A stretch of 64,000 nt of DNA from Antechinus flavipes. Taxonomy: Eukaryota. The position numbers were made by a program, and so were the translations under genes. Of this stretch, positions 12,564-42,558 are shown one piece after another. Positions within the stretch are counted from its first letter, which is position 1. Each line of letters opens with the position of its first letter. The stretch lies in assembly GCF_016432865.1 (NCBI RefSeq), contig NC_067401.1, forward strand, positions 39,494,001 through 39,558,000. The letters run 5' to 3'. A model generated the notes under the pieces. It searched no databases. It saw only the letters and a list, made by a program, of their open reading frames with translations, and had not been told where the DNA came from.

Positions 12564-14179
12564 TGGTATATGATTTCCAGAGGAAATGGAGAAGGTTTGG
12601 CTGAGTAAAAAACCTCTTATAAACCACTGCTTGATGAAATTGAGGAATTCATGTTACAAACCAGTATTTTATAAACAGTGGCAGGACTTGGGGTCAACGT
12701 GTAGCACAACCAAATAGTCTACACAGGGTTTCTAAATCAAATCAGTTTAACACGAGTCCCTGTCCTCAAGCTAATTCCAGGCCACAGGGCCCCACAAGAA
12801 GAGAGCAAAGTCAAATAATTCTTACTGGCTGTATCCTAGGCCAAATGTTCTAACATTCTATGACTCAATTTCTCCATTTACATAAGATTACCATGATCTC
12901 TATCTTCCAAGAATATTTCAATTCTCAGAAGGAAATTAAAATAGCTTAAATTTCCATCATGCTTGAGGGTTAAAAAAAAAAAAAAAAATACAACCTTTCT
13001 TTAGAACAATCTTCTTAAAGTAGACTTTTTATAGACCAGAAACATATGGCTGAGAGAGGCTAATTGGCACTGCCATAAGCAAATTGATCAACTAACGAGA
13101 GGAAGATACAGTACTCTAACCCAAGTTGGCCAGACTTCAAATTTCGTACTTTCCCTGCTCTGCCACGTTGTCTCCCTAAAGGTTTTTGACTTTATATATC
13201 AAATGGCACAAAAGAGATTTTGCTTAGTGCTTCTGCTTACTAGTTTAAAATTTAAAACTAGTTTTTTCTAGCTTACCAGTCAAGAACTCTGCTAATGCTG
13301 GCTTCCTGCAGAAGGGCATTTTCAAGAAAACCTATTTATAAGATGAAAATTTTACACATCTTGATCACTCCTACAATAAATGCTCCCAGAACAACAAGGA
13401 ATGAATGAGCTAAATAATAAAGTGCAGAAATACCAGTGTGAAAATTAACTCTTTATCAGTACATGTGATGATATTGAATTTCCTTAAAACAACCAAAAAG
13501 ATTTCAATTTTCTAGGGAAACAATTACAGAAAGTAAACATAAATTACTTCAAAAATGTAGGCAGGCCAGCCCTGAAAAGCTAGATTCCAGTTGATATCAG
13601 AATCGCAACTCTTTTTCACATTTTTTTGTTTTGTTTTTTAACTCCAGGTTTCGGTGGAACTGAGTTTTCATCATCTGTGCTGTCTATGTTTAACCACTCA
13701 ATTTTATCAAGTATCTTTAATCTCATTTTGAGGCCATCATCTGCTATAGGAAAGGAAAAAGTGGTTGGGATGACATCACTAAATAGAAACTGGGGTTAAC
13801 ATTACTTCTGGAAAAGGCCAAAGATGGTTTTATTTTCTAACATCTCAGAAGACAGAAATGAAGTAAGGATCACAAATGACGTATTATATCATATATTACT
13901 ATAAAAGGATATTAGGGCAGCAGTTAGATAAGCATGATATAAGTCTTTTTTTTTTTTTTTTTTTTCCCCTAATGAAGTCCATGAGTGAGAAAAGAGAAAG
14001 GATTATTGGGGCTGGGGCAGCAGTTAAGATTCTTTCAATATTGTACATATATGCAAATATATATGATCCCCTTACACATTTAAAGTGTATATTCTTACAG
14101 CAGCAAATATTCTTAAGCTTCCCTGAAGCCCCCCATTCCATTCTCTGAACCCCAAGGAAGAAAGTAAATTGCACTGAAG

Positions 14180-15620
14180 ATGCCAGCACTTGGGGAGTGC
14201 ACAGGGCCCCAACTTTCCCGAAGCTCCGCACGCCAACGCCGGTAGCAGCCGCAGCCACGGGCAGCAGGCTCGCCCGCGCGCTCTCTCTGCACAGCACCGG
14301 AGTGAGATTACAGCCCCCAGTCTCTGCACGGGAACCCCAAAGCTTCCCAGAAAGACTGCAGCTCCATCCCCAGCCCTCCGCAGGTCTAAAAGAAGGGGGA
14401 AATGAAGAATAAAGGAGTCGGCGCCGGGAGATAGCACGAGGATTTATTTGCACCGAGGACTAGGCGGCGGCTGCACCACGTGCACGCTTCAAGGGCGCCC
14501 GGGGAAGGAGGCCCTGGCGGGGAAGCATCGCCGGGCAGAGGCGGCCAAAGCCCCCGCGACCCCCACGTTCGCCACTTCCCGGCGGGCCCGCTGGAGAAAT
14601 GGGGGGCTGAGCCAGGTTCGGGGGCCGAGGCCTCTGATCGTGGGGCGCACACGTGGGGTCCCCTAGCGGCCTCGCCGGCGCCCCCCGTGGCCGTGCCTGG
14701 GCACCGGCGCCGGTGCTCCCCGCCCTCTCCCAGACCCCTCCCCTTCCTCCCGACTCCATCCCCTTCCTCCGGGCCCCTCCAGGGGCTACCCCCGCCGCTC
14801 CAGCTCCCGGGGCCGCGAGGGGAAAGGCGGGAGGGGGCGCGCGGGGACTGACGGACCCCCCCGCCCAGCCTCTCTTTCCACCCCCTCCCGGGGGACTCAC
14901 CGCTGCGTTAGGGGTGCCGCTGACCCTGCTACCTCCGCTTCCGCCAGTTTGGTCCCTTTTTTTCCCCTGAGTAGGACGCCCGGTCGGCACTAGCCACTTT
15001 TTTCGGCTTTTTCATAAGTGCATATTGGGTGGGTGGGGGGGCCTTTAACCCCCCCTCGTGGAGAAATGGAGGTGACAAAATGGCGGACCCGGAAGTAGTG
15101 GGGCCGCAGAAGATCAACTCCGGCGGAGGAATGCGCTGTGGAAATCGATCAAAGATAGCCCTGTCCCCGCTAAAGAAAGGGTGGTAGAGCCTTGGGGGGG
15201 CTAATTCTCCGAGTTCTGAGGCTCTCTGAAGGCTCTAAACCTCCCCTGGGGTCTGTGTAGAAGGGATTATTTTAGCGCCGCGGAATGTTACGTGTTTTTA
15301 CGTACTACAAAGTCCCGGCAAAGGGAGGAGCAAGGGCTTTTTTTTTTTTTTTTCTGTTTTGGCGCCAAGAACTGGAAGAAACCGTGAGGAAAAATTCCTC
15401 CCGGGCTGCGGTCGCCTAGTGGGTGTTTCTGCCCCGGGCCTCCAACAGAACCGCGGTTCTCCAGACATCTCAGCCTCGGGACGGGGCGGGGTGTGGACCG
15501 AAAGGTCGCTCTTGATGCTAGGGTCACGCTGTCGCGAACGTGGCCCTTGGAGGTCTTTCCTTCTCCTTCCACTTCGAGCACGCCAGAGCGTGACAGCGGC
15601 CCCTCTGTGGAAATGGTGCG
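14180..15620. promoter_or_regulatory. CpG island / GABPB2 promoter with YY1 (AAAATGGCGG 15077-15086) and ETS/GABP (CCGGAAGT 15089-15096) motifs
   Basis: Very GC- and CpG-rich stretch in an AT-rich background; motifs read directly from the sequence. Confidence 0.85.
14901..15095 (-). other. GABPB2: GABPB2 non-coding exon 1 (5' end approximate)
   Basis: Donor GTGAGT at 14900-14895 inside the CpG island. The first coding exon starts with ATG directly after its acceptor, so an upstream non-coding exon is required. Confidence 0.7.
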
Positions 15621-16793
15621 TTTTTCTAAAAAGAGACATTAGTGTGAGACGATAAGCCTTTATGATTCCCTTACTGTGTGCCAGACACTGTGTTCCACGC
15701 TGGGAAACTTAATTTTCCATCTTGCTGCTTCCATTCTAATGGGGGATGGGAGAAACCGACACATAAAGAGGAACTGAAGAAGGGGGAGGGGAGAAGCGGC
15801 CGGGAAAGAGAGAAGAATTAAGGGACTGACCCAGGACAGACTCGGTAAATCCTAGCATCATCAAGTTTATTTATCCGCCCGTTAATTTTTTTCTTTCTCA
15901 AGATCCGTTTCCTGAAAAGTAACTTCAATCTTCTTAAAAGTCCGATTAAATGATTCCAAGAGGCATATTGTTGATTTTATCCAACCTCCTTGAATGAGGC
16001 CCTAATATTAATGAAAATATTTCAGGGATTATAGATGAGGCAATTTATGTGTTCCCACTCCCTTTTTTGAATGCCCAGGGTGGAGGGATCTTTGAGTATT
16101 GAAGATTTTACATTTTTCCATTTGCAAGTGATTTCTTTGAGTTCTTATAGCATCCTTGTACCTTTAAGTAATTTCATAAATTGTGATTCTAATGTTAGCT
16201 CGAGTTTACTTAACATCTTGCTCTAACCAAATTATATAGACAGGGTCGGCGATCTTCAACCCCTTTCCTTTCTCTTAAGTACCCCAGTAGGCCCTCAAAT
16301 CCCTTGATATTAGCAACTACTAAATGGTAATTCCACCTCTAAATGAGGTAATAATGAGGTGCCAAGTCAGACACGTGGAACAAAAGGGGACTGCTAGGAG
16401 CTGGAGGCAACCGTCTCTCCAAAGCTTTGGACTCGTCTTGTTCCCTTATCTGCACCACACTAGATGATCTCTAACATCTACAATTAGAAGCCTTTGCCCC
16501 TAAGCCTTTCACTTGTTAGGGAAAGTACTGGGTTTCAGAGCAAACTCAGGGAAGAAGAGAGGCTCGTAAAATTGGAAAAAACCAAATGACTTCTCTGAAC
16601 TCGGAAACTTCATCGTTTCCCTCATATTTGGACCACCACCTTTCTGCATAAGGCGTTCATTTCTTTGCACCCCTCCCCCCCAAGAAATGACTAAATGATT
16701 AAAGCTGTACCCCTAGGAAACAAAATCCCCGCATATCCCAACTGCCTCCCTATGAAGAAGGAATCATGAAGTTCGGGTGTGGGATTAAACAGC

Positions 16794-17901: not shown

Positions 17902-18177
17902 TTAAATCAAGTCCAACTCAAAGGAGTGGATGCTGGCAATAGGAGCTCTCCAGAAGTTGAAGGTGCTGTATTCGAGAAGGGGATCGCTTTCAGGATGTTT
18001 CTGCTGCACAGCTTCACTTGGCTTCTCAGACAGATTCCCATTGTTGCTGTTGTTTCGGGTCTTATAGGTGGACATGTCCAGCAGACCTAGGCCCTCCAAC
18101 TCAGACAGATCCAGTTCGGGAATGGGCATCCTCCAGAAAAGGAAGGAGCTATATTGGCTGCTCACAGGGTCCCACAT
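17902..18177 (-). CDS. MLLT11: Protein AF1q (MLLT11), 91 aa, single coding exon
   Basis: MWDPVSSQYSSFLFWRMPIPELDLSELEGLGL...EYSTFNFWRAPIASIHSFELDLI*. ATG at 18177, acceptor CAG at 18186-18184 giving 6 nt of 5' UTR in this exon, TAA at 17904-17902. Confidence 0.97.
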   Translation of the reverse strand: MWDPVSSQYSSFLFWRMPIPELDLSELEGLGLLDMSTYKTRNNSNNGNLSEKPSEAVQQKHPESDPLLEYSTFNFWRAPIASIHSFELDLI

Positions 18178-21100: not shown

Positions 21101-22333
21101 TGTATTATTAACCCAGAAGCTCATACAGAGATAGATACAGAAACACAAAGATCTAAATAGGCAGTAACTTACAACAGAGAAATAAACTAGGTATGCGCAT
21201 AAAATTTCTCTGAATGACTGGTGCTTAAAATGCCCTTCATAACAGTGGTATTCACTTTAGAATAAAATTTTGCATGGGATTAAACAAAATCTGATAAAAA
21301 GCTTTCCTTACTCCGGAAAACAGCCCTTTTACTGCTTGGACAGAAGCTATAGCCTTCATTTTCAATTATCTAGACTTTTAAGCAAAAGCATATTTTGCCT
21401 TCAGTTATCTGGATAAATTTACATGTTGATGCAGGCAAAGGTTATCAGACATATGAAAGAGAAGAGATATAGGAATATAGAAATACAGACAGACACACCC
21501 ATTCACAGACACACAAAGACTTGGTCACATCAAACCTTCTTAGGACCTGATGTGTTTACTACCTTCGCCTCAGAAAATCTGTGTCATGATGTTACTCATG
21601 AAGGAAAAGTAATGGAAACCTTTCCGTTATAAACAGCCCATCCTGTCCCCAACCCTTTTAAATAATATTATTACCTTTCCCTCCAGACCTCTAAGCTGCA
21701 AACATGCAGTCCCCCAGAAACTGGCCCCCATCCCCTGGTCTTGTGCACTGCACTGAATTCAAATGAGCCGGCAGGACAGCTCCCCATCACAGAAGGCCTT
21801 CCCTTCCCTACTTCTGCCTCTTCTCCAGAGAGAAAGGTTAAGACAAGAGAAGACTGATGTCCAGAGCATTGGCAGCTATTCCTACATAACCTGCTTTGAT
21901 AAATCTTTCCCAGGGTGAACGCTGATTTCACAGAGACATATCAGAGAAATACTAAGATTTTTTTAAAATGAGGTAGATAGATTAATAATGATAAAACAGT
22001 AATAATGATTGATCGATAAAATGACAGATGAATAGATCAATACATAGAGATATTACATATTAAGGAAAAGACTATATATGCTTACATACACACAAATAGC
22101 TAGAAATAAGATTTGGGAAGGTAATTAAATATTCAAAGATATCTAGAGCTGGAGGGATGTAAAGAGAGATAGGAAATTACATGAATAAATATGACAGATC
22201 ACATCTATTAAGTGACCACCTTTTATTTAGAACTCCCCTTTTACTGCCTTTTCTGTCTTCCCAACCCATGGTCCATCCCCGTAAAACAAGCTGCCTCTCT
22301 GCTCCCTCTACCTTTCCCCTCAGCTCAGCTTAC

Positions 22334-22600
22334 CAGTCACCAACAGTCGGGGGGTTCCAAGGATGGGTCAGCCTTCAGGGGTCTTGGGCTGGTGGATAAA
22401 GAGAAGGTTGCAGTTGAAGCTTTGTCTGTCTCGCTCTCACGCCTTCTCCCTCTGCCTGTGAGAGTGTCTGACTGTCTATTCCGTCTCCCCCTGCAATGCA
22501 GCCCCTCCTAAAGGGGCGGAAGGACTCCCCCGCTCCCCTCCCCCTCCCAGCTAGGGCCTCTGACTCTGCTAATTCTCAATGATTCTCGGGCCTGGCTTCT
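22334..22600 (-). other. MLLT11: MLLT11 non-coding exon 1 (5' end approximate)
   Basis: Donor GTAAGC at 22333-22328. The minus-strand segment TCCTTCCGCCCCTTTAGGAGGGGCTGCATTGCAGGGGGAG resembles the human AF1q 5' UTR as I recall it. Confidence 0.65.
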
Positions 22601-22859
22601 CTGGGGGAAGAAATCAGATAGGCCTGATGGAGGACCAGTCACAATATGTTAATTAACTTCCATTTCGCCCAGACAGCTGCTAACAGTGCCCCGGGAACCA
22701 GTTTCTTCTTTGATTTATTTTTAGGTTTATGAATTAAAATGTCTACATTGCAGCAAGAGGGGAGGGTTTAAAAGGGGTGACTCCCCCCCCCAACTTCAGA
22801 TGGGAAATGGCTTTTAGAATCAGAGACGCTCTTGATTCTTTTTCCACGTTGTCATCTTT

Positions 22860-25300
22860 CAGAATACCCCCCCCCCCCAAACCCAAGCTGGGAGGAGCAC
22901 TCCCCTCCCCCCCCAGCTCTACCTGCCCTTAGAGAAGGGCATAGGAGAGGCTTGGGGAGGAGACTCCGGGGGGAGGGAGGGAAGTCTGTGATCCATGAAG
23001 TCTAATGTCAGTAATGTTTAATCTGCTTGCAGAAAGGGCAGAAACGTTCCTTTTGACCTTCAGGGAAGAGCCTGGGGGGGACTCGGGGCTCCTGCCCTCT
23101 CCTGGCCTCTCGCCTCCTCCCCGGGCCCACCCGAGCCCCTCGGCCCTCCGAGCTTCCCCCAGCGGGGTGGGCTGGCTCCCGGCGCTGCCCCCCTCAGCCG
23201 TGCATTCCCCGATCTGTCCAGAGTGGGAGCTGCGGGCCCGGCTGCAGAAAGGCGGATTTCGTAATCGAGCTGCTACCGTTTCCGCCATCAGCCAGCCCCA
23301 CCTCTCCCCAGGCCCGCCCTCAGTTCCCCCACACCGCCTAGAAGAGAAAACCTTGAAGTTCCTGACGGGAGGACCCAGGGCTGGAGCCAAGAAGCCCCTC
23401 TTTATCCCCAGCAGACCTTTCAATCCCTGGGAAAGGCAGGTCAGAGAGCAGGGGCTCGGCCGGCTCTGGGCTTTTGTCCACTCTGGGGGTGGGGGGAGGG
23501 TGGGAAAGAGGGCCACCGGATGCTGAGGGAAGATCTGAGCCTGGATGGATTTGAGGTGAAGGGGCTGTGGGGGGCGGGAAGGAACCCCCCATTTACCCGG
23601 CTCCCCCAAGAACAGCTCGACAAACCTAGGTCTAGTTAGTTCTTTACGGTGAGAGCCACGAAAGGGCCCGAGAGCAGGGGAGGTTGGGGAGTCGAGGGCT
23701 GAAGAAATGGAGGGGGGGGGGAGAGGGACTCCCTCTGAGCCCAATTAACCTTGAGATTCTGGTGGGAGATTTAGATCAGCGACCTGGGTGGGGGAAGCTT
23801 GGAAAATGGCCAAGTAAGGTAAGAGGAGCAGCCGCTGAGGAGGAGGATGGTGGACTTCCGCCTTCAAGTTTCCAGCCGTAGGCCAGTAAGAGGCGGACAG
23901 AAAAGCGAAGGTCCTTGAGAAGGGCTTCTGGGAACGCCGGGCTGGAGGCCGGGAATGGAGCTCAGGGGAGCCGCAGGGTGACGGGTTTATGTGGGGACTC
24001 CCTCCAGGAGGCCTGCGGCGGGCACAGCGCTGCCTCTAGCCCCCAAACTAGGGGCGGTGGGGGGAGGGCCGGGTCTTGCCCGCGCCTGTCACTTGACCGA
24101 AAACCCGGGGTCCTGCCCCCCTTCCTGGGCCCGTCACCCCTTCTCCTTGTCCCAGGCCTTTCCGGAAAGAAGTCGAGGTGCTTCCCCTTTCTCCCACCCC
24201 TCCACCCCCCTTCTTCCTTTCTCTTTCTCTCCAGCTGCTTCTTGTGAAGGCTTGTCAGGCAGCGGCAGCGAGCCGGAGGCCGGGGCCTGGGTGCTGGGAG
24301 GCCGCGGGACCGGGAAAACCGGTTTGGGGCCAGGCAGGACCAGGGAACGGCGCCCCTCCTGCCTCCCTCTAGGGTTCTGTTCCCCTAAGATCCCAGCCCC
24401 GCAAGCCCGGGCTGTGGCTCCCAAGGTTTGGGGGACCAGAGGGCACCATCCCCTTGGCTCTCCGGACTGCCACAGCCCCGTCCTTTCCCAGGAAGGGGCC
24501 GGGGTCCTCGGGGCCCCGTGACCTTGGGCGGAGGAGGCGGCCTTTTCTCTGTGGGAACCAGTGAGGAGCTCCCCTTGACTGCCTGGAAGTCCCCTCCTAG
24601 AAGCAAGTCCCTCTCCTTGGGGCTGCCTTCTCAGCCACTCCCCCTGCCTCTCTGGGTGGGAAAAGCCCCGCCTCTGGAGCGCTGCGGCCCGGGGCTCCCT
24701 TCTCTCCGCAGGCCCGCCCTTCGCCAGCCGCCCGACCCCGCTGGCTGCCTGCTTCCTTTTCTGCGCCGAGCCCCCCCCCAGTCACCCAGGCCTGACCTCC
24801 CCACATGCCCACTTCCACACAAGATGGCCACCTGGGCTGGGGGGAGGGGGCGGGGACGGGCGGGCTCCCGAGCTTTCTCCTTTGAACTTCAACAGCCTCA
24901 AGATTCTCCAGGCTGGAAGAACGGAATTTCCCGGTCACTTCTTAGCATCATTTGTCGGCTGGGGCCAAGCGCTGTTCACACTTTCCCTCCCCCAGCTCTG
25001 GCCAGGTCCCCGCAGGAGGGAACAGAAGGATCCTTGTTCCCTCCGCCGCTCCCTCCCCCTCCCCGTCTACCTCTGTCCACTCAGCTTCCCCGGGACAGGC
25101 CAGGCTTAACAGAGCCTGCCTTGGATGGGGCGGGGGGAGTTTCCTCCGATTCTTCATTGTTTTCTCCATTTCCCCCTTGACCTCTTCCACCCACTGTTAC
25201 CACTGAGACAAACCCTATGACTGACCGCCCCCCAGAGCACAGGTCCCCCCTCCCCCCCAACCCGCGTTTGTCTGTCCTAGCTTCTGCCCTTTGTCTGGTC
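22860..25300. promoter_or_regulatory. GC/CpG-rich divergent promoter region shared by MLLT11 (-) and CDC42SE1 (+)
   Basis: 2.4-kb GC-rich island between the head-to-head genes, with many G/C tracts and GC boxes. CDC42SE1 exon 1 boundaries could not be fixed. Confidence 0.75.
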
Positions 25301-28300
25301 CTTCAGCGACAGGAGACAAAACCTCCGTTAGTTTTCTTTTCTCCCTTGACTCAGTCTCCTATAAATCTATGTTCCCATTTTATTGCTGTTCCATCTCTGG
25401 AGTTCTCAACAGGGAGGAGTCCAAAAGCCAGGCTTAGGGGAGAAATGAAATAAGGCTAAAAAGGTTTTAAGGTTAATATATGTGTTATTTACTCCATTTT
25501 ATGGATCAGAAAATGGGCTTCATGAGATTGTGATTTGCCCATGTTTACAACAGCATCAAAACCAAGATTCTCCCCCGGGCCTTTACCATATCCCCCATCC
25601 AGTGCTACATACCTTGGGTATCTGAGATGCTGCTGTTAACTGCACAGCATGACAACCGGGCCTAGGAGATAATTAATACATGTTTACTTAATAAAAATTA
25701 TTGGCAATATATTTTGATGAATACATTCATAAAAAGGACTTAATTTGGAAAATAGAGGGTCTCCTTTTTTGGATCCAGATTTGATGGCTAGTGAGAAAAA
25801 TGAGACATGATATCTCCTGTCTCTGAGCCATCATCACTTAAGTCATCCCTCTTGCTAAGAGTGCACTTCCGTCCTTCTCATCTCATCCATTTGAAATCCT
25901 CTCCCTCGAAGGCCCTTCCTGCCTCCCTCAACTCTTTCCTGATTCACTTGCTCTGAGAAAAGGGAGATAATCATATTGTATTTATACCTCACAGGGTTAC
26001 TATGAGGAAAGCATTTTGTAAACATTCAGTATATTAATGCAAACTATTCTCTATCTTTTGCTCTTACCAATATAATTCAGTAAGAATATAGTAATCATTT
26101 ATGTGGCAAACACTGCTAAGTGCAGGAGTTACATAAAGAGGAAAAGGGAATGGTCCATGTCTTGAAGGAGCTTACATTCTGAGGGAAAACAATATGTCTC
26201 AAATAAATAAATTCAAAATATATGCAAAGGAAATACAAGATAATTTTGAAGCTGGGTTTGGGTATAGACCAACAACTAAGAAGACCAAGAAAATCCTCAT
26301 CTAGTAGATAGACTTAGAATTTCAAAAGGGGAAGGGAAAGATAGGGATGATTAAGACAGGAGATGAAATATACTATACAGAATACATGTTCTAAGTAGCC
26401 CATTTTGGCAGAATCAATGAAAGGGAGTAATATGAGATGGGTTTTGGAAACTGTGTGGAAGTCAGTTATCTGGTTCTAGAGGTAATAGGGAGACACTGAA
26501 GCTTCTGGAGGTCAGCAGAGACAGAATTATACTATAATGTATGTCACACCTAATTCATTGTAATTACTTAAGGGTCAGTATTGTTATTTTTCCATCTTTG
26601 TATCTCCAGTGCCTATTATAGTTGGCACTGAGTAAGTGCTTATTGAATAAATGAATTATAACAAGTTTTGAAGTGAAAGGTCCTAATCTTATAGACACCA
26701 AGGATCCTTAAGCACTTAAAATAGCAGTGGATATGTCTTTTAGTTTGGTGCTGAGCATCTGGTTGTTGAGGATGGGCAATTAGGTGATGAAGCAGCTGAT
26801 GGTGCTTGTAAAGGGGAGGATGTTGACTCAAGGCTGGTGAGAGCAGAGGTCTTGTGGGGAATAATGTGGAATAGAACACCACACCAAAGTATGTGGAGAG
26901 AATGGGTCTAAAACCTTGCTAGGATAGAGGACCCCATAGAGACAACATATAGACAACAATTATAATATGCAGTATATGGAAACATAGAATATACATATCA
27001 TTTATACAGTAAAACATATCACACTAAAGACAAACAAAGAATGTAAAAACACACACACACATTCCTGACTATATTTCAAGGTCAGGTAATGGAGGAATTA
27101 TGACAAACTGTCCCTGAGGGAAAAAGGGAGGATATCATTTCAGTTTAATGAACATTTATTGTTCCAACTATTTTCAAGGCATTATGTTACGCTCTGGAAT
27201 ACAAAGTTAAACCATGTGGTTCTCTTCCCTCAAAGATTTTAAAATTTTATTTGGGATGGAGGATAGAGCACAAACATGATAAATTATGACACAAAGTTGG
27301 TTGTGATGGGGAATATTCTGGCCTTAAAACATTCTTTAGAAAGTCTAAATATGCAGTGATTGTTTTTATCTGAAGGAATCAAGAGATTTCATGACACCTG
27401 ACTCAAACCCTGAAGAAAAAGATTTCATCAGGCAGAGATGAGAAGGGAGTAAGTTCTAACTATGGGGATTGTCCTGCCCTGATGCAGGAAGATGAAAGGG
27501 AACATAATGACACTGGACAACAACAGTTAATTAGAAGGCCTGTGTTGAACATTAAAATGCAAACTACTCCCCCCCCCAAAAAAAAAAAAGTGGTATGATT
27601 AAGGCAGGAAAGATGTTAAAATCAGATTGTAAAAGAATTTTATTGTCAGAAGGATATTTTTAAAAATTTCTATGGGTAATAAATACTTTCGTTGGAGAAA
27701 ATGAGAGGCAAAGTTAGGAGGAGAGACGAGACAGGGCAGAAATGGTGGTGGTAGGGAAGGAAGGTAGGGGCCCTGTTGATGAGAAGAAGAAACCACTATT
27801 TCCTCTTCAGTTCTAAGTTATTTATCTGCCCCTCCTCTTCCGCCCCCACCTCAGGGAGAGAAAGCTGAAGCTTGCAACACTCCCCAACCCAAATCAGCCC
27901 TGCTCTCCTCCCCATTGGTTCTCCTCTCCTTCCTCCAGCACCCCAAATCTCTTATCTCTCCAGCTGCCACAGGCTTCTGTCCTTCGCCTTTTCCTGTCCA
28001 TCACTGTCACCTCTTTGCCTGAGCTATCAAAACCAGTAGGTCCTCAAGTGGACAAGGAGGAAGCAGTGTTAGGATGGGGGGCGGGGGCAGGAAGAGGAGA
28101 CTGGGAAAACGCTGCTGGCATTGGAGTAAGGGGTTCGCAGAGAAGAGCTGTACCTCGCCATGACTTCTTCACCCCCTTCTCTCTTCCAGGTCTCCAAGTC
28201 TTGAGGAAGATACAACTTTCAGCTACATTTGTTCTACTCTCCTCTTCCTTCCTAGTCTGCCATGGACTGAGGCACTGACTAGTTGAAGGTCCTTAAGATT

Positions 28301-28456: not shown

Positions 28457-29619
28457 ATGAGTGAGTTTTGGCACAAACTGGGCTGCTGTGTGGTAGAGAA
28501 ACCCCAGCCGGTGAGTCTCTCTTTTCTCCCCCCCCCCCCCCCCCTTCCCCGACCCCATCACACAAGAGGGAGCATACCTTGTGGTGTTCACACCTGGCAG
28601 GATCTGGTCCTTTCAGGCTCTCTGTGTCTTGTCTGCCAGGCTAGTGTCTCACAGGCAGATAGTACATGAGGCAAAGTTTAAAAAATGGTCTCAGTTTTCT
28701 CCCATCCTGCTCCCTATTCCCTGGTGGGCAGGAAAGGGGGCAGTGCTAGGCAACTACCCATATTGTTCTCTCATCAAACCGAGTGACTTCAGCTGATTCA
28801 GCATCTGCCCTCTAGACCACGGCCCCAGGTCCTTTTTTCCCATCTTCCTGACACAATGTCTTTTTAGTTCTAGTCTCTCCCTCATACTCTGATCTGCCCC
28901 TCTCTCCCATGGTCTTATTGAGGAAAGGGTCTTTCCTCCCTAGAGGATCTGAGCTCCTTGTCCCTCTTTCTCAGCTCTGGCTGACAGCCTTAATTCTTAA
29001 TCTTTTCACCCTTTCCCAACAGAAAAAGAAGAGAAGGCGGATTGACAGGACCATGATTGGAGAACCAATGAATTTTGTTCATCTAACACACATTGGCTCT
29101 GGAGAGATGGGGGCTGGAGATGGACTCTCCATGGTAAATATGAGAAAAGAGGGATGCTTGGAATGGGGATCTAAGATAGGAACTGTTCCCTTCTACTGGA
29201 GACTGAAGCTATTGCCTGGGAGTTTTGAAAAGGAAGTCTCCAAGGCCTATCTCAAAAACATGGTTTTGAAAAGCAAATTGGTGTAAAAAAAAAGATAAAA
29301 ATATAAGCATTATAAAAATGCAGAGTATTATTAGGAAAACTGCTCACATTTCATATTTAAGAATAGACTAAGTGAACGGGGCTGAGACTATATAGCTAGA
29401 AAGGTGAGGTCTAAGAAATGACTTTGTAGTTAAGGAGACTTGGGGTCTGAAGGGTATCTCCTTTCCAGGAAAAATGACTATCTGTGTGGGGAGTTGAGGT
29501 AATGAAGGGTCAATGTCATTCTCTAAGATGCCTTTTCCTCACAGACAGGTGCTGTACAAGAGCAAATGCGGTCCAAGGGAAACCGGGACAGACCGTGGAG
29601 CAGCTCCAGGGGCTTATAG
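28457..29619 (+). CDS. CDC42SE1: CDC42 small effector protein 1 (SPEC1), 79 aa, CRIB domain
   Basis: Coding exons: 28457-28510 ([18 protein letters not shown]; exon starts 28190), 29023-29133 ([37 protein letters not shown]), 29545-29619 ([24 protein letters not shown]; exon ends 29633). N-terminal CC motif and CRIB ([12 protein letters not shown]) intact. Confidence 0.98.
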
Positions 29620-32105: not shown

Positions 32106-32724
32106 GTTTCAGAAGGATCTTTCTGTGTAGGGGTTTGTGGGAAGGGGGAGGTGGAGAAGAAGAGGGAATGCTGTATCTGGGTGGATGGAATTTAGGAGGT
32201 TCTTGGCTTACCTTGTGGGTACAGGTAAGAAACAAAGGTGGATCTAGCCAAATGAGGCACTTCCCCTGCCTTAAGGAAGGGCTAGACAGAATGAAGGCAG
32301 GGAAAGGAGGGGATGACTTCTGAAGGGCCTCCATTCCTTGACTTTCCTGTTCTCTACTTTTCCTTTTCTTTTACTTTAGATTGACCGAGATTCAGACTAA
32401 CCCTGACATAAGGAAGAAAGTAAATAATTTTTCAGGCTATAACTTGGGATCGGGGAGCCAAGGAAAAAACCTATACAGAAACTCCCTATTCTTTTCTTGG
32501 GAAGAGGGATGTTTCCAGCCTCTTGTAGGCCCAACCACCCTTTCAATAAGATAAAAGACCAAAAGGTTCTGTTCAGTTTTGTTTTGTTTTTATATTATAA
32601 ACAGCCATTACTACTTTACAAAAGATATCTATATGATCTGGAAAGTTAGTAGTGGGAGTGGAAGGGGAAAGAGACTAGGGTGCTGACACCCCTTCCTCCT
32701 CTGGGGCTGGACACGGAGTGGCCA

Positions 32725-35713
32725 TCACCTCTGGTTTCTCTTTGTCTAGGTAGAGAAGAGAAAGGGGGAAATTACAATCACATTTGTATATTATCCCTTC
32801 CCCCGATTTTCCTTCACCTACTATTCTACTGATACTGCTCTCCCTAAAGGTGCTATGCATATTTTTATTTTTTATTTTTGCTGAGGCGCAATTGGGGTTA
32901 AGTGACTTGCCCAAGTTAAGTGACTTAACACTGGAAGTGTTAAGTGTCTGAGATTTGGACTCAGGTCCTCCTGACTTCAGGGCTGGTGCTCTATCCACTG
33001 AGCCACCTAGCTGCCTCCTTGCACACAACTATTTTATAAGATAAGTCTTAAATAGTGGGGGAAATACACCCCTACTAGAATACAAGGGAATCTACTCATT
33101 TCATGCATAAATCTATACTCTCACTGGACATTATGTAAAGCAATCCATTAAAGGGGAGAAATAGGAACAGGCAGTGACCAAGACAAATGTATATTCCTTT
33201 TACCTGGCTTCATCCCCATACTGGAAGATCATCCTACCTCCTCGAATAAAGGAGCAATACTAGGTCAGTGCAAAATAAATCATTACCTAGTCAATCAGTG
33301 CTGTTTGAGCTACTCTAGGTAATTGCCAGCCACTGACTGGTGAATATCTATTGATAAATCATTGATCTATCCACATCTAGGAATTATCAATGGATCAGTT
33401 TCCATTTATTAAGAATCTGTACAATGATTGCTTTGTACAATTTCAGTGATTTATGATGACCAACACAAAGATTAGTCAATGACCAATCAAGAGCTATTTG
33501 ATCAGAACTCTTAACTACTATCTAAAAATGCTGACTTCAATGAACTAAATCATGTATTGATATAAAACTAGTAACAACCATGGATCAGGTAATTCATTGG
33601 ATGAGAGATCATTAGAGCTGGGGCGGTCTTCTTAATCCCCAGTGCTCTGCACATAGCAAGTGCTTAATAATAAATGCCTCATTCTTTCATTCATGCATTG
33701 GTCCCTGATGCTCACCCTTTTTTCCTTAGTCATCAGGGATTGGAGGCCTACCCAGACTTCTTCCAGCCCTTCCCGGACTTGTTTCCAAAATGTTTCATTG
33801 ACGGTGTCTTCTGGACTCCCCAGTGGGGCCAAAACAGCACGGTACTGGCAGGCACCAGGGGCACTGGAAGGGCAAAGGGTGTGATCTAAGGGACATTCAT
33901 TCTTCTCCTGGTTACAGTGGCAGAGGGCATAAGTGCAGGGCTGGCGCTGAGTCTCCAGGCGGCTCATGGCTCCAGATCTAAGACGCCCAGTGAAATCTAA
34001 AATCTTTCCTCCCCGAACTCGGCTCATGAGACCCGTGGGGCAATGACATTGCCATGGTCCCCAAGCCAGCATCACCAAGTGCTTCCCTTGTAGAGGAGCT
34101 GGAATTGTGTTGGAAAACTCCTGTCTCCTTGGTGATGGCTTAGGCGCCCTGAGACCCAGGCTGGAGAAGAATCCTGAGCTCTTACTCTTGGACCCAGGGC
34201 CCAGACCCATCTTTGCCTGCTTAGAGGCCTGCTGCTCCTTTGCCTGTGCCAGTTTCTGAATCTGTTGCTGCTGCTGGTCCTCCCGCAGCTGCTCTTGAAT
34301 TTGTGGCTGCTCCAGCTTCTCAGGGTTCTGTTCCTGCTGCTGCTGCTGCTGCAGCTGCTGCTCCAGCTCCTGTTGCTGCTGCTGCTGCTCCAGCTCCTGT
34401 TGCTGCTGTTGTTGCTCCAGTTCCTGTTGCTGCTGCTGCTGCTCCAATTCCAGTTGTTGTTGTTGCTGCTGCTGCTGCTCCAATTCCAGTTGTTGTTGTT
34501 GTTGCTGCTGTTCCAGCTCCTGCTGCTGCTCCAGCTCCTGCTGCTGCTCCAGCTCTTGCTGCTGCTGTTCCAGCTCCTCCTGCTGCTGCTGCTGCTCCAG
34601 CTCTTGCTGCTGCTGTTCCAGCTCCTCCTGCTGCTGCTGCTGCTCCAGCTCTTGCTGCTGCTGTTCCAGCTGCTGCTGTTCCAGTTGCTGCTGCTCCAGT
34701 TCCTGTTGCTGCTCCAGCTCCTGCTGCTGCTCTTCCATCTCCTGTTTCAGCTGCTGCTGCTGCTCCAGCTCTTGCTGCTGCTGCTCCAGCTCCTGCTGCT
34801 GCTGCTCCGGCTCCTGCTGCTGCTCCGGCTCCTGCTGCTGTTCCAGCTCCTGCTGCTGCTCCGGCTCCTGCTGCTGCTGCTGCTGCTCCAGCTCCTGGTG
34901 GCGCTCCAGTTGATTCTGCTGCTGCTGCTGCTGCTGCTCCAGTTCCTGCTGCTGCTGCTGCTCCAGCTCTTGCTCCTGCTGCTGCTCCAGCTTTTTCAGC
35001 TGCTGCTTCTCCTCCGCGTGAACCTGAATCTGCTTCAGCTCTTGGTCCGGTCTTTGATTCTGCTTCAATCCTCCGGCTTTCTCCTCTTGCCTTTGGCCCT
35101 TTTCCCCCTGCTTTTGCTCCTCGAGCCCCTGCAACTGCTCTTGCGGCTCTCCCCGCCCTCCTTCCTCTCCCTCTCTCTCATCTTGTTGCTCTTGCTCCTC
35201 TAAATCCTGGATTTCGCTCTGTTCCTGGTCCTGCTCCGTTTCCTGCGCTTGGCCCTGATACTGCCCTTGGTCTTCGGAATGCTCCCCCTGCTTCTCCATC
35301 TGGGCAACTTCTTGGTCCCGGTCCTCAGTCTCCTGGGCTGGGTCCTCGTCATTTTCTGGGTCCTCCTTCTGCTCTTCTTCCCCGTCTAACTCCCGGGCCT
35401 TCTTCAGGCCCCGCCCTTCCCGGTTCCCAGGTACCGAGGACATCGAGGCTGCCGGGAGCTTGGCGGCGGCGGCGGGAGCTGCGGGCTTGTCTTCTTCCTC
35501 CCGATTTCGCGTCCTCCCCACCGAAGCAGGTTCATCCCTTTTCGCGATGCTGGGCCAGCCCTTGGTCAGGATCCCCGCTGTGACGGTGTCCCCTTCGCTG
35601 CCCCCAGCCCAATCCGCTCCGGGCTGGCTCTGGACCAGGACCCTGGCTTTTACCGCCCGGGCCCCCAGGAACAGCCACAGGGCCCAGAGTAGCGCGCGGT
35701 CGCTGGGGATCAT
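32725..35713 (-). CDS. C1orf56: Protein MENT (C1orf56) orthologue, 672 aa, signal peptide plus large Gln/Glu-rich repeat expansion plus Cys-rich C-terminal domain
   Basis: Exon 1 33716-35713 (666 codons, ATG 35713, MIPSDRALLWALWLFLGARAVKA signal-like; C-terminal LAWGPWQCHC...RLRSGAMSRL...PCTYALCHC...ECPLD...FWKQVREGLEEVW), donor GTGAG at 33715. Exon 2 32725-32745 (TKRNQR*TGA) after a TAG acceptor; compare recalled human ending IDRNQR*. Sits between BNIPL and CDC42SE1 as in human. Confidence 0.92.
32865..33018 (-). mobile_element. Marsupial CORE-SINE (WSINE1/Mar-type) in the C1orf56 intron
   Basis: T-rich tail, then GCTGAGGCGCAATTGGGGTTAAGTGACTTGCCC...GACTCAGGTCCTCCTGACTTCAGGGCTGGTGCTCTATCCACTGAGCCACCTAGCTGCC. 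Subfamily name from memory. Confidence 0.7.
34328..35005 (-). repeat. Coding interrupted CAG/CAA repeat encoding (E-L/P-E-Q3-8)n
   Basis: CTG/TTG runs on + interrupted by CTCCAGCTC-type units. Longest pure CAG run is 7 codons (34916-34936). Internal 48-bp (34546, 34594, 34642) and 36-bp (34441, 34477) duplications. Confidence 0.97.
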
Positions 35714-36544: not shown

Positions 36545-39500
36545 TTAGGTTCCTCTGGAGCCATGTAGATCCTTGTCCAGCCTAGATTGCAGGGAGAGAG
36601 AAAGGACAAAGCAGAGCATCATATCCTAACCCTACTGGAACTTGGAGGAGTAGATCTGGTAAATAAATGGCTGAGTCCTTTCTAGTTTTCTCTACTCCTT
36701 GGCTGCTCTCCATAAAATCTATCCTCTCAAAACTATGGTCAGTCTCCCCCACATAGCATGTGCTGGATTTTGGTTTCAAATAGGGCTTTGCTGCTCACTC
36801 TACATGTAATCTTGATTGAGTCTCCCAAATCTCTAGACTTCAGCTTCCTCCTGAACAGAGAGAAGAGAGTACGTGACCTTTGATGTCAATCTGAGATCCC
36901 ACAAACATAGTCCCTCCCATCCTTCCAAGCTCACTTCAAGAAAGCCTTCTCTTCTAATGCTATCCCTCCTCTGGCCGTTCTGTCCTGTCTCCCTGGGATT
37001 TTACCCAGCCTGTACCCAACACACCAGATACAGAGAATTCCCAAGGCATTTTCTTTTGAGTGCTGGGCTCCTGATTAAGTTTTAAGTGTGAAGTTCAGAA
37101 GGTGAGAACTAGGACTTTCGCTTCTTATCTCTCCACGATTCTGCCTGTTTATTCCCCTTCTTTTCCCCATCCTCGAAGTCCCTCTTAGAACTCACTGTCT
37201 GACGGCATCAGGGATGTGGATATGTTCCAAGGAGATGAGCTGGGCCAGCTCTCCTAGACTGTCCAGAAAACGAACTTTTCTGCTAAACTTGGAACTCAGG
37301 AAAGAAGAAAGGTCACATGTATTTAAGATTAGAGAAGGACCTCTCACACATCTTTATAGAAGACAAAGGAGGTCCGCTACCTAGTTGAGACAGGAAAGTG
37401 TGGTTAGAGCCAGAAAGGGTGAGGGGAAAGTGCGGATGCTGAATGTGAGAAAGAGGAAGGGGCAATGGATCTGAGAAGCAAGAAGTTCATATCCCTAGAG
37501 ATAAATACCTGATAAAAGGCCGGAGCATCATCAGAAGTGCCTTCACATACCAGGTAGCATGCACAACCACCAGAGCTCGCAGGTTTTTTCGGAGTCTGAA
37601 GCAAAAAGTGTGGAATCATCACATTCTTAATCTGAGCCCCAAACCCAGAAGGATGTCTCTTCTGGACCTTCCAGATCATCCCCTCTTTAATCAACATTCA
37701 TTTCTAATCCTCCATTAGGAATTTCTCTTTGAGGGCCTAATCTTCATCTTCCCAGCTGCAGCCTGAGGCCCTCACTTCTGTTTTTGTCTTTCATGCCCTT
37801 CTCATACAGAAGAAATTCCTGAAATGCCTCCTGTCCCCAATCCACTCCAACTTGTGTCGCACAGCTTTTCGGTTTGCTATTCTCTGGACTCCTCTCTCTG
37901 TAGCTGCCTACTTTCTTCCTCATTCTTGGGTCTCCTCTGCTTCTTCTAGCATTCTTTTTATTCCCTTGAGTTCTTATTCAAGAACTCCAGTGGCACAGAT
38001 TCAAACAGCGGAAGAAAATATAGAGGGCTGAGAGGAAAGGGAAATAAGTGCCTGAAAGGCAGGGACAGAGAAAATATAAATCAGAGGAGAGGGATATTTG
38101 GGGAAAGGCAGAGAAGGAGAAAAGGGAAGGGAAGAGAGAAGACAGTATGAGGGACATCTTGGGAGGAGAAAGAAATGGGATCAGAGAAGAGTGAGTGGGT
38201 AAGATCTTTCCAAGTTCCTCACCGTCGGTCCAGGGTACGGTAACACTGGCGGATCCAGCTCAGAGTGGGTACCTGATCTCGGCTGGTTCCTCCACTCAGG
38301 TGGACAAGCAGGTAATTCTCAGCAACTAGTAGTTCTAGAGTCCCCACTATGTACCTGGTAGTGAAGGGAGAGGGGCCGTTAGAAAGTAGTGTGAAGCTGA
38401 TTACTGATTAGGTTAAGGTCTTCCTGATTTCTTTTCCTTCCCTCCTTCAGTCCACTCTTCCCAGTTTTTCAGGATTCCCTTCTCACCTAAAGAGGTGCTC
38501 CATGACATAACCGTAGTTAGGGATGCTGCTTCTAGGTAAGTAGCAGGAAGCAAAAAGGATAACAGCATTGAGGCCATCACCATGGTAACCTGGGGAGAAC
38601 AGGATTGGAGGTCGGAAGGAAAAAAGAATTAATGAAGTCTGAAGAATTAATGAAAGCAGACCAAGAGGGAAAGGGGTAGGGGGTTGAGTAAGTTAGAATA
38701 GTAGGGAGAACTGATGATTCTCAGCTTAAATATTATTAATTATAAGGAACCCAGCTCCTATATTTATCCTTTATCATCTGTTACCTCCATGAGACAGGAC
38801 CTTCTTATAGGGTTCAATGATTGTCATATCTACTCGAAGCTCCTGATGTCCTATTCGGAACACCTTCACTCGATGGCCATCTTCCCCAGCCATATCCCAC
38901 ACACAACCCTGGCCCAGTCTTTCAGCTGCTTCACTTGCCCCCAGGCCCTCTGCTTGGGGAAGCTCATCTAAAAGAGACACAGGAATGGTTGTATGAATGC
39001 ATTCCTCATTACTCTTGAGTATAACAGAAGCATAATGACCTGAACAGTTGTTATATTCTTATTCGTCTCCCTATTGCCCCATTTCAATCCATATTCCCCA
39101 ACTCTTTCTGAATATATCTAGGATTGAACCCATAGTGAGGACAATTGATGGCTTTGCTACATTTAGGGAGCAAATGAAAAGTCATTTCCAGCTCAGTTGC
39201 CTAATTTTAATGTGTCCATTAACTACTATTATGGCCCCTTTAATATAAAGGTCTTTCATATATTTATGTATGTATATGTGTGTGCATATTGTACAAATAA
39301 GTGCAATACATTTAAATTATAAAAATGAGTGTGCGCGCACACACACACACACACTTTCCTGGTTATGGCTCTGTTGGCTTTACCCAATATTAGCCCCATT
39401 CCCATTTTTATCCATATTTGGTCCATTTCATAAGGATCAAAATATTTAGTGTTAGAGACCTTAAAAATCATCTAGTTTGGTCTCCTAATTTTCCTTTGAG

Positions 39501-41348
39501 ACCCAGTGAGAAGACCTCAATCTTCTGACTTCATATATGGTACAATTTTTAATGAACAATGCTTCCTCTCTCTGTCAAGGAGTCTGCCAGACTAGCTCCT
39601 GATTGACTAGTCTTTTAATTCACAGAATTCAAAAAAGGGTTCAAGGAACCCTAGAGACCATCTAGTCCAGCCTCTTCTTGAAGACCACAATGAGGGGAAC
39701 CAATTACTTCACTCACCTGCCCATTTCAGTTGGCCAATTCATTCCTTAGTCTCATTTAATCTTAGGCCAATTCTGTTAACTTCCAGTGATTATTTCTCAG
39801 CTCTACCAGCTATGTCCCAATTTATTAGCCCCGTTTTTCTCTCCCACTCCATTCCCCCAGTTCTGTCATTCTAGTTTAGTTCTTAAAGTACCTACCTTCC
39901 CACTCAAATTCGTGCCCGCTGGAGTCTGAGGGTGTCTCCAAATCATCCACATCTAGGTCAGAACTATCATGTGGTGAAGAAGGTGTGGAGTGGCTGGGAG
40001 AGACTTCTTTATCTCCCGAGTCCTTCCCCAAGCTCAGTTGGAGTTCTGGGGCTGAAAGGCGCTTCCGCATATGACGCCTACCACATAGTGCTAATGTGCT
40101 TGAGGGACCTGGGGTGACAGGGAGAAAAAAACTGAAGAGAGGGAAAAGGTGATTAAACAGTCTGGAAAAAAAAAGGGGAAGGGAGGAGGGTAGAACTGAC
40201 AGGAGAGACACAAGAGAAGGACAAGGGAGGCACTCCCTTCCCACAGTTCTAATCAAGGTTTTTCTGACCTCACTCACCTATCTGGGTGCCCTCTCCATTG
40301 TCCTCTGGATCTTCAGAGGAATTGATCTCCTCGGGGAGCAGTCTGGGATGTGAGGAATTAATTAGATGAAGGGTGCAGGAAGAAATGGTTGTCCTACCAG
40401 CCATGCTCTTCCCATCTTGACTTTGTCCTTTCCATCTCCCCACTTATGCTCCCATACATTCTAACTCCACTTTCTTTCCCTGTTCTCTCACCCGGGGAAC
40501 TCTTCATCTTGCCACTCTTCTTCCAATTCCACTTCCCCAAATCTCAGCGATGGTCCCAGCTCTTCCACTTTCTCTCCAGCCCTGAGACCATTGCCAAGGT
40601 ACAAAGGAATTGAGAGATGATTAGTGGGGCAGCATTACTCTTGGGAGTAGGAGGAAGCAGCAAAAGGCACAAATGTCAGACCTATAAGAGAATCCAGCCA
40701 GAAGCTGTCCCCACCCTCTAGGTGAACCAGTTTATCCCTACTCTTTGCTTTTAGCAACAGAAGTAGGAAGGAGTATAACTTAATGTACTTTACACCTCTC
40801 CAAGTCAGTTTTCCCTCCCACCTTCCCTACAAAGTTAGGGTGAGAGGTGGCCCACATTGCAAGTGGCCTGAATCCAGGACAACTATACCCAGCTGTTACC
40901 TTAAATTTGAGGGAAGATGACAGTCAGGCCTGCCTTTTCCCAACCTTTTGGGGGAAATTGAGGCATAGGGCAACATGGACTAGGAACAGAAAAACCATCA
41001 AGAAGGTGCTGGTCTGGTGTCCTTGTTTTGGAGAGTGAATCAGAATTGAAAGCATGGATAGTCATCACGTTCTCCCATTTTGCGGAAGTTCTTCTGGGGT
41101 CCTTTCTATCCATCTCTCTCTTACGTTTTTCTATTTAAAACTATCCCTGTTGTCAGCCAAAAAGAATGACTTTGTCCTATCTCCTATATGTAACTATCCT
41201 GAGCTTTAGCTTATGAGTCAAATTAATGGAATTTAAAGAGACGTCCCCTCCAGACCAATGACACCAGGTTTTCAAGAGGCAGCCAGGTGAGGGGGGGAGG
41301 GAGGCCCAGCACTTACCCCAGATCTCTTGGTTCCTCTAACGTTCCCAT
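36545..41348 (-). CDS. BNIPL: BCL2-interacting protein-like (BNIP-2-like, BCH/CRAL-TRIO domain), 346 aa
   Basis: Ten coding exons: 41317-41348, 40492-40581, 40278-40342, 39896-40108, 38785-38967, 38487-38589, 38223-38354, 37509-37595, 37196-37294, 36545-36581. Total 1041 nt, in frame. Motifs [65 protein letters not shown], ending [11 protein letters not shown]. Confidence 0.96.
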
Positions 41349-42407: not shown

Positions 42408-42558
42408 NNNNNNNNNNNNNNNNNNNNNNNNNNNNNNNNNNNNNNNNNNNNNNNNNNNNNNNNNNNNNNNNNNNNNNNNNNNNNNNNNNNNNNNNNNNNN
42501 NNNNNNNNNNNNNNNNNNNNNNNNNNNNNNNNNNNNNNNNNNNNNNNNNNNNNNNNNN
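42408..42558. other. Assembly gap (151 N) between BNIPL and the PRUNE1 3' end
   Basis: Run of N. Confidence 1.

Follow-up and report, generated by a model that had tools for sequence, protein, structure and literature searches.

A glutamine-rich ELEQ repeat tract in the predicted MENT protein of a dasyurid marsupial

The closest described system to the gene considered here is human MENT (C1orf56), a protein expressed in testis and sperm, which has been purified on a sialyl-Lewis-x column from capacitated sperm and localised to the acrosomal region. The purified protein binds the zona pellucida and is a candidate sperm zona pellucida receptor, and an anti-C1orf56 antibody lowers both zona binding, with a partial block, and the zona-induced acrosome reaction (PMC8329450). 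MENT is also commoner in the sperm of fertile men (PMC11292545), and has been measured in human plasma proteomics (PMC12074732). The family is represented in Pfam by PF15322 (PMSI1, 'protein missing in infertile sperm 1'). Here we describe the MENT gene of Antechinus flavipes, a dasyurid marsupial, in a stretch of 64,000 nucleotides of contig NC_067401.1 (positions 39,494,001 to 39,558,000, assembly GCF_016432865.1); this whole stretch is referred to as the window, and positions are counted from its first letter.

The window gene is a functional MENT gene with an array of ELEQ repeats in the middle of its protein. We favour, with a probability of about 0.68, the explanation that the array is a product of slippage and duplication in a tolerant spacer, and that it is translated as a long spacer of high negative charge that precedes a thrombospondin-repeat-like module. 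The gene itself is known, and three other marsupial orthologues with Gln-rich middles are already annotated; the ELEQ variant was not found described in the literature searched, in which we found no discussion of marsupial MENT or of its Gln-rich middle, and where reviews mention C1orf56 and marsupials incidentally.

The repeat tract and its place among MENT orthologues

The ELEQ(3-8) tract, delimited by composition and by Tandem Repeats Finder, occupies residues 241-462 of the predicted protein (34328..34993; this and all other MENT features are on the minus strand). It is 58% Gln, 26% Glu and 13% Leu, with about 129 Gln in its 222 positions, two Lys, one Arg and a net charge of -54. The repeat units have the form E-L/P-E-Q(3-8) and are irregular, varying from 5 to 9 residues; Tandem Repeats Finder reports 34334-34986 with period 6 (CTGCTG, 71% matches), and a dominant period is absent from both the DNA autocorrelation and the Leu-Leu spacing. 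An earlier note, made from the letters of this DNA, had described about 225 codons of (ELEQQQQ)n. A tract of nearly that length is indeed present, but it has neither a uniform unit nor a single period, and because its units are irregular the formula is an idealisation.

The codon usage and internal structure of the array point to its origin. Gln is encoded by CAG 109 times and by CAA 22 times, and a 48-nt (16-codon) unit is duplicated, exactly over at least 128 nt; these two features together constitute a slippage signature. The array is interrupted by CAA, GAA, CCG, AAT, CGC and CAC codons and by unequal unit sizes. A pure polyglutamine tract is ruled out, as the longest uninterrupted CAG run is seven codons and the longest Gln run eight. 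These features are those expected of an old array that grew by slippage and unequal exchange and has undergone a duplication recently at least once. A repeat-copy search on the array returned a smear of overlapping copies and was uninformative.

CAG/CTG repeats are open in several frames on both strands, and an open frame within the tract therefore says nothing for coding; the evidence for coding comes from the non-repetitive N- and C-terminal parts, which stay in a single frame in this gene as well as in the three other marsupials. We note that the plus strand carries poly-Leu and poly-Ala open reading frames of 312-452 aa across 34178-35583, and that two further minus-strand frames are also open, all of them a consequence of the repeat. 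Two of the plus-strand frames, of 447 aa (poly-Ala) and 312 aa (poly-Leu), were considered and rejected as by-products of the CTG/CAG repeat rather than genes.

AlphaFold2, run on the single sequence, predicts helices at residues 223-282, 302-460 and 471-499 (pLDDT 70-81), with residues 19-222 mostly disordered apart from a lower-confidence helix at 162-184. If fully helical, residues 241-462 would extend about 33 nm. A regular heptad coiled coil was rejected, as there is one Leu per unit and the irregular Leu spacing (6, 7, 9 and so on) gives no steady heptad; the net charge of -54 and the near absence of basic residues further speak against a canonical coiled coil or a single alpha-helix domain. 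The cautious description of the tract is that of a highly anionic, extended segment with predicted helical propensity.

MENT proteins were collected by word-indexed sequence searches over 125-397 aa and 366-1165 aa and by an exhaustive HMMER search, which gave 27 family representatives from sharks to mammals, including one (P0020) that is an unrelated repetitive protein. The searches returned three long proteins from other marsupials: tammar wallaby (P0001, 735 aa, including an upstream extension of about 100 aa), sugar glider (P0002, 588 aa, isoform X2, with a similar extension) and wombat (P0003, 596 aa, carrying the source name 'transcription factor SPT20 homolog'). All four marsupial proteins have a Gln-rich repetitive region at one shared position, with units that differ: tammar has repeats of the type QPHIQAQKQVKG, wombat has QRPPQLEQIPFQPH, and the glider has a poly-Pro stretch. 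To judge from these sequences, the repeats at this single site took a different form in each marsupial lineage.

Conservation along the protein is correspondingly uneven. Counted over all positions, the window protein is 59-68% identical to the other marsupial proteins in the N-region, 12-31% in the repeat tract and 21-33% in the post-repeat linker; the acidic segment that precedes the tract is 44-56% identical to those of tammar, glider and wombat over all positions, and 58-62% over aligned positions (residues 106-225). Identity in the C-terminal domain is 67-80%. The fraction of Gln before this domain is 0.32 in the window protein and 0.11-0.18 in the other marsupials, and it does not exceed 0.06 in any of the 23 non-marsupial sequences. 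The net charge of the same region is -73 in the window protein versus -18 to -39 in the other marsupials.

The length of MENT varies widely among vertebrates. The echidna protein has 232 aa, and those of squirrel, shrew and pangolin 322-360 aa, with Ser/Thr/Pro-rich middles containing 2-4% Gln. Lizard and snake proteins have 240-343 aa, the gecko protein 513 aa and the alligator protein 277 aa; the tailed frog has 159 aa, two caecilians have 537 and 637 aa, and shark and sawfish proteins have 407-470 aa. Between 49 and 613 aa precede the W-x-x-W motif in these proteins, which argues that spacer length is free to vary family-wide, and the size increase by itself is not unusual in this family.

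These comparisons bear on two claims of the earlier note. It had the protein doubled in size, and the predicted 672 aa are indeed about twice the length of the sampled eutherian proteins with their Ser/Thr/Pro-rich middles. Its suggestion that this lineage had replaced the spacer does not hold, as the proteins of tammar, glider and wombat are also long (588-735 aa), have 11-18% Gln before the domain and share an acidic segment that is about 60% identical. Because these three species share the acidic Gln/Glu segment, the spacer predates the dasyurid-diprotodontian split. By these sequences the Gln/Glu-rich middle characterises marsupials: all four species sampled have it, and every monotreme, eutherian, reptile, amphibian and shark orthologue sampled lacks it. 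It follows that this composition would have arisen after the eutherian split and before the dasyurid-diprotodontian divergence. The ELEQ array appears private to the window lineage among the species sampled.

Gene structure, conserved ends and neighbourhood

The MENT coding region is organized in two exons. Coding exon 1 (33716..35713) is an ATG-to-donor open reading frame of 666 stop-free codons, with the ATG at 35713 as the start; upstream of it the frame is open to 35959 with no in-frame ATG. The exon ends in AAAAGG|gtgagc at 33716/33715, a consensus donor whose score of 8.7 is the highest within exon 1 in a crude consensus scan. An intron of 970 nt follows (32746..33715, gtgagc...ctacctag), and its acceptor, a polypyrimidine tract closing in AG, lies directly 5' of the exon 2 coding part (32725..32745; ACA AAG AGA AAC CAG AGG TGA), which encodes TKRNQR and a stop codon; the tammar and wombat proteins end in IKRNQR. 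The 666-codon exon and the six-codon last exon give the predicted product of 672 aa. In tammar and wombat the NCBI gene spans, 3062 bp for a protein of 735 aa and 2639 bp for one of 596 aa, are consistent with the middle lying inside one large coding exon. The window contains one run of N, of 151 bases at 42408-42558, beyond the BNIPL exons, and none in the MENT gene.

We note two peculiarities of the orthologous gene models. Those of tammar and sugar glider begin about 100 aa 5' of the conserved predicted signal peptide and would thereby bury it; the extra residues are probably artefactual, an open 5' leader having been modelled as coding. Isoform X2 of the sugar glider has an early exit from exon 1, following ...EEVWL, and then uses a different frame of exon 2 (DKEKPEVMA...). 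In the window, 32678-32760 of the minus strand is open in this frame with the same DKEKPEVMA string, and GTAGGC stands at the corresponding site of exon 1; a minor alternative C-terminus of MENT may thus be conserved between glider and window.

The N-terminus (residues 1-23, MIPSDRALLWALWLFLGARAVKA; 35645..35713) resembles a signal peptide in hydropathy and conservation, with a charged n-region, a 12-residue hydrophobic core (residues 7-18, peak Kyte-Doolittle 2.1) and A-V-K-A preceding the probable site of cleavage. Alignment A1 of marsupial and eutherian orthologues has M1, P3, L8, W10, A11, L12, L14, L16 and G17 as invariant positions. A hydropathy scan of the protein detects no hydrophobic segment outside the N-terminus, and therefore no membrane span; these features fit a secretory-pathway protein with a predicted signal peptide. 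A moderately conserved N-region (residues 24-105) leads into the acidic Glu/Gln/Asp-rich segment (residues 106-240; 34994..35398), recognised by its composition and common to the other marsupials, which is 25% Glu and 23% Gln with a net charge of -30 and nine Lys. On the other side of the repeat tract is a linker rich in Gln, Lys and Ser (residues 463-540; 34094..34327), also delimited by composition and containing eight Lys.

The conserved C-terminal module (residues 541-666; 33716..34093) consists of a W-x-x-W-x-C-x-C...R-x-R segment with eight Cys, followed by an amphipathic helix. WGPW lies at residues 551-554, the Cys residues are at 556, 558, 593, 598, 600, 607, 614 and 622, and there is a single N-x-T site at 639. 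In alignment A2, of 26 MENT-family sequences from sharks to mammals, 13 columns are invariant (W12, W15, C17, C19, M24, R26, R28, C54, Y56, C59, C61, C68 and W104), and the window protein carries all 13. Residues 541-666 are 70-80% identical to their counterparts in other marsupials. A structural model of the domain from this alignment (mean pLDDT 69.7) has a small beta region and then a long helix. Its best matches by three methods are thrombospondin type-1 repeats (TSRs), though all are weak and individually non-significant: by Foldseek, those of semaphorin-5A, properdin, THSD7A, thrombospondin-1 and F-spondin (E 0.19-1.1); by VIA-align, THSD7A (Z 4.2, rmsd 3.1 over 55 residues); and by sequence profile in the PDB, circumsporozoite protein, TRAP and thrombospondin-1 (E 0.017-2.3). 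To our knowledge the fold of this domain has never been solved. Its likeness to a thrombospondin repeat is not new, as a TSP1 profile in C1orf56 is already in print (PMC8329450).

The protein matches Pfam PF15322 with 117.3 bits (cutoff 29.6; E 1.1e-33), residues 475-663 corresponding to positions 117-311 of the 315-position profile. An NCBIfam search of the protein gave no match, as expected for a vertebrate protein. Pfam matches on window exons identify the neighbours: an ankyrin exon of a GABPB2-like gene (8840-9142, minus strand), MLLT11 (17905-18177, minus strand), a CDC42SE1 exon with the CRIB/PBD domain (28852-29283, plus strand) and BNIP2-domain exons of BNIPL (38777-39058 and 39879-40277, minus strand). 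The gene order in the window is therefore GABPB2-like, MLLT11, CDC42SE1, MENT, BNIPL, and the annotated loci of tammar and wombat have the same order and relative orientation. Window MLLT11 is 97% identical to that of Sarcophilus, 84% to Dromiciops and 78% to Monodelphis, which places the DNA in a dasyurid. We assign the gene to MENT/C1orf56 because of the PMSI1 match, the W-x-x-W/8-Cys domain and the conserved gene order. The orthology proposed in the earlier note is thereby supported, and its outline of the protein also stands: the single open 666-codon exon (on translation of 33716-35713), the normal second exon, the signal-peptide-like N-terminus (as a prediction), the acidic stretch and the WGPW/8-Cys domain were all recovered, on the minus strand, which the note had left unnamed.

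Two GC-rich blocks, at 14001-16000 and 22001-26000, have 55-57% GC versus 35-40% in the sequence around them, and overlapping open frames are numerous in both. The blocks probably represent CpG-island promoters that belong to neighbouring genes toward GABPB2 and MLLT11.

Explanations for the repeat-bearing spacer

In the explanation that we favour, CAG/GAG/CTG-rich DNA would have given rise to the ELEQ array through replication slippage and unequal exchange, in a host spacer weakly constrained in both length and sequence. The tract would be translated, remain in the mature protein and serve there as a long spacer with a strong negative charge, extended or helical in propensity, which would keep a glycan- or matrix-binding C-terminal module apart from the N-terminal part; it would be neither catalytic nor a domain that is recognised specifically. 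From the analogy of human C1orf56, the protein would probably act in the acrosomal region or at the surface of sperm. Several points weigh against this explanation. We infer the translation and exact length of the tract from the DNA sequence, and MENT proteins of dasyurids, didelphids, bilby and Dromiciops were not found in the protein collections, though their MLLT11 proteins are present; MENT may have been missed or mis-modelled in the devil, opossum, bilby and Dromiciops annotations, perhaps through its low-complexity exon. The helix prediction is a single-sequence one of moderate confidence, and with a charge of -54 and almost no Lys or Arg the tract may be disordered at neutral pH. A neutral spacer is also a default assumption, and the persistence of a Gln/Glu middle in four marsupial lineages could reflect selection.

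As human C1orf56 is a candidate sperm zona receptor, the fast evolution of a reproductive protein is a live alternative, in which sexual selection or sperm-egg coevolution would drive both the Gln/Glu middle and the ELEQ array, and changes in the number and charge of the repeats would adjust adhesion, spacing or species specificity. Repeats that differ between lineages and lie between conserved flanks are a pattern common in gamete-recognition proteins, and the MENT repeats do differ in each marsupial lineage at one site between conserved flanking domains, although neutral slippage would equally predict fast change in a low-complexity spacer. The sialyl-Lewis-x and zona binding of the human protein and the antibody effects on zona binding and the acrosome reaction are in keeping with such a role, although the block of zona binding was partial (PMC8329450), as is its greater abundance in the sperm of fertile men (PMC11292545). 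For marsupial MENT we regard the alternative as unlikely. A more specific proposal, which we find quite doubtful, is that the marsupial middle is a selected module of a sperm-egg recognition protein that reaches its extreme in dasyurids, either as a polyanionic rod that would be compact or helical in the acidic acrosome and expand at neutral pH, or tied by transglutaminase cross-links into a matrix of the acrosome or of seminal fluid, with the lineage-specific repeats contributing to species-specific fertilisation. The earlier note had suggested more generally that the Gln-rich tract could be an extracellular transglutaminase substrate or scaffold; in the manner of involucrin, it would become cross-linked into a matrix. 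Involucrin and the proteins of seminal clots or plugs are Gln-rich transglutaminase substrates, and the abundance of Gln in a predicted secretory-pathway protein, flanked by Lys residues of the acidic segment and the linker that could act as amine donors, would suit such a role by analogy. The tract itself, however, has just two Lys and its strong negative charge, and it lacks the Q-x-P-hydrophobic and Q-x-x-hydrophobic-D-P motifs, which are the forms preferred by TG2. The gene sits in a BNIPL/CDC42SE1 setting with no epidermal-differentiation-complex genes inside the 64-kb window, and its product has a predicted signal peptide, unlike involucrin. The repeats of the other marsupials contain Pro, His and Lys and are quite different, so that a transglutaminase role would be new to the window lineage; we consider it very unlikely.

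The remaining alternative is that the tract is absent from the mature product, either because it is removed as an internal intron (exitron) or because misassembly has given it a false length. Short-read assembly copes poorly with long imperfect CAG arrays, and no dasyurid protein model for MENT was found in the protein collections, but the array is full of distinct interruptions and unequal units, and the gene has no N run. A tammar model (P0004, 213 aa, UniParc UPI0001B21596) fuses the N-region straight to the C-terminal domain and is the one hint of a short form. It was rejected as a splice isoform lacking the middle, as it runs into the intron, has an internal frame-shifted stretch, is known by an old UniParc identifier alone and has no matching splice sites in the window; it is probably an artefact of a gapped low-coverage assembly, and the current NCBI models of tammar, glider and wombat keep the middle coding. 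In the window, a crude consensus scan of exon 1 detects no credible in-frame donor/acceptor pair that would splice out the tract, with no donors scoring 5 or more upstream of it and no in-frame acceptors after it, and the sense strand there is purine-rich without polypyrimidine tracts. Absence of the tract is accordingly the most improbable of the explanations considered.

If the tract is a tolerated slippage product, as we favour, it would represent a routine low-complexity expansion in a disordered linker. The marsupial proteins nonetheless have a wider interest. MENT is poorly understood, and the difference between a Ser/Thr/Pro-rich, mucin-like spacer in eutherians and a long, acidic, Gln-rich one in marsupials is a clade-wide switch; the lineage-specific marsupial repeats provide a ready-made series in which to ask whether function depends on the spacer. 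The tract also adds another example of a CAG-derived Gln-rich segment in a predicted secretory-pathway protein.

Comparison with known systems

Involucrin and window MENT presumably share a single large coding exon, Gln/Glu/Leu repeats thought to be CAG-derived and 'LEQQ'-like strings. Involucrin is a cytosolic protein with no signal peptide and regular Lys-containing repeats, and is encoded in the epidermal differentiation complex together with S100, SPRR and LCE genes. MENT, in contrast, lies between BNIPL and CDC42SE1/MLLT11, has a hydrophobic, signal-like N-terminus, has almost no Lys in its tract and carries a thrombospondin-repeat-like Cys domain. TSRs fold as a three-stranded Trp-Arg ladder. 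The MENT domain has the motif order W-x-x-W, C, R-x-R in common with them, but its cysteine pattern (C-x-C, then C-x-Y-x2-C-x-C) departs from the canonical one, and it is followed by a family-specific helix.

The tract also invites comparison with polyglutamine, Q-rich coiled coils and single alpha-helix (SAH) domains, with which it shares CAG-dominated coding DNA and the helical propensity predicted by AlphaFold2. Polyglutamine proteins of the disease type are nuclear or cytosolic, whereas MENT is predicted to enter the secretory pathway, and SAH domains have Glu alternating with Lys or Arg, compared with the two Lys and one Arg of the MENT tract.

The closest relationship is with MENT itself. 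The window gene has the family's two-exon coding layout with a terminal x-K/D-R-N-Q/R-R mini-exon, and the neighbours BNIPL, CDC42SE1 and MLLT11 are shared. Its product resembles MENT in a signal-peptide-like N-terminus, an AAPAAA motif, an 8-Cys domain of the form W-x-x-W-x-C-x-C...R-x-R and a FW...GLE..W helix at the C-terminus, and differs from the sampled eutherian proteins in a Gln/Glu-rich middle that is about 330 residues longer, about 222 of which are CAG-derived ELEQ(n).

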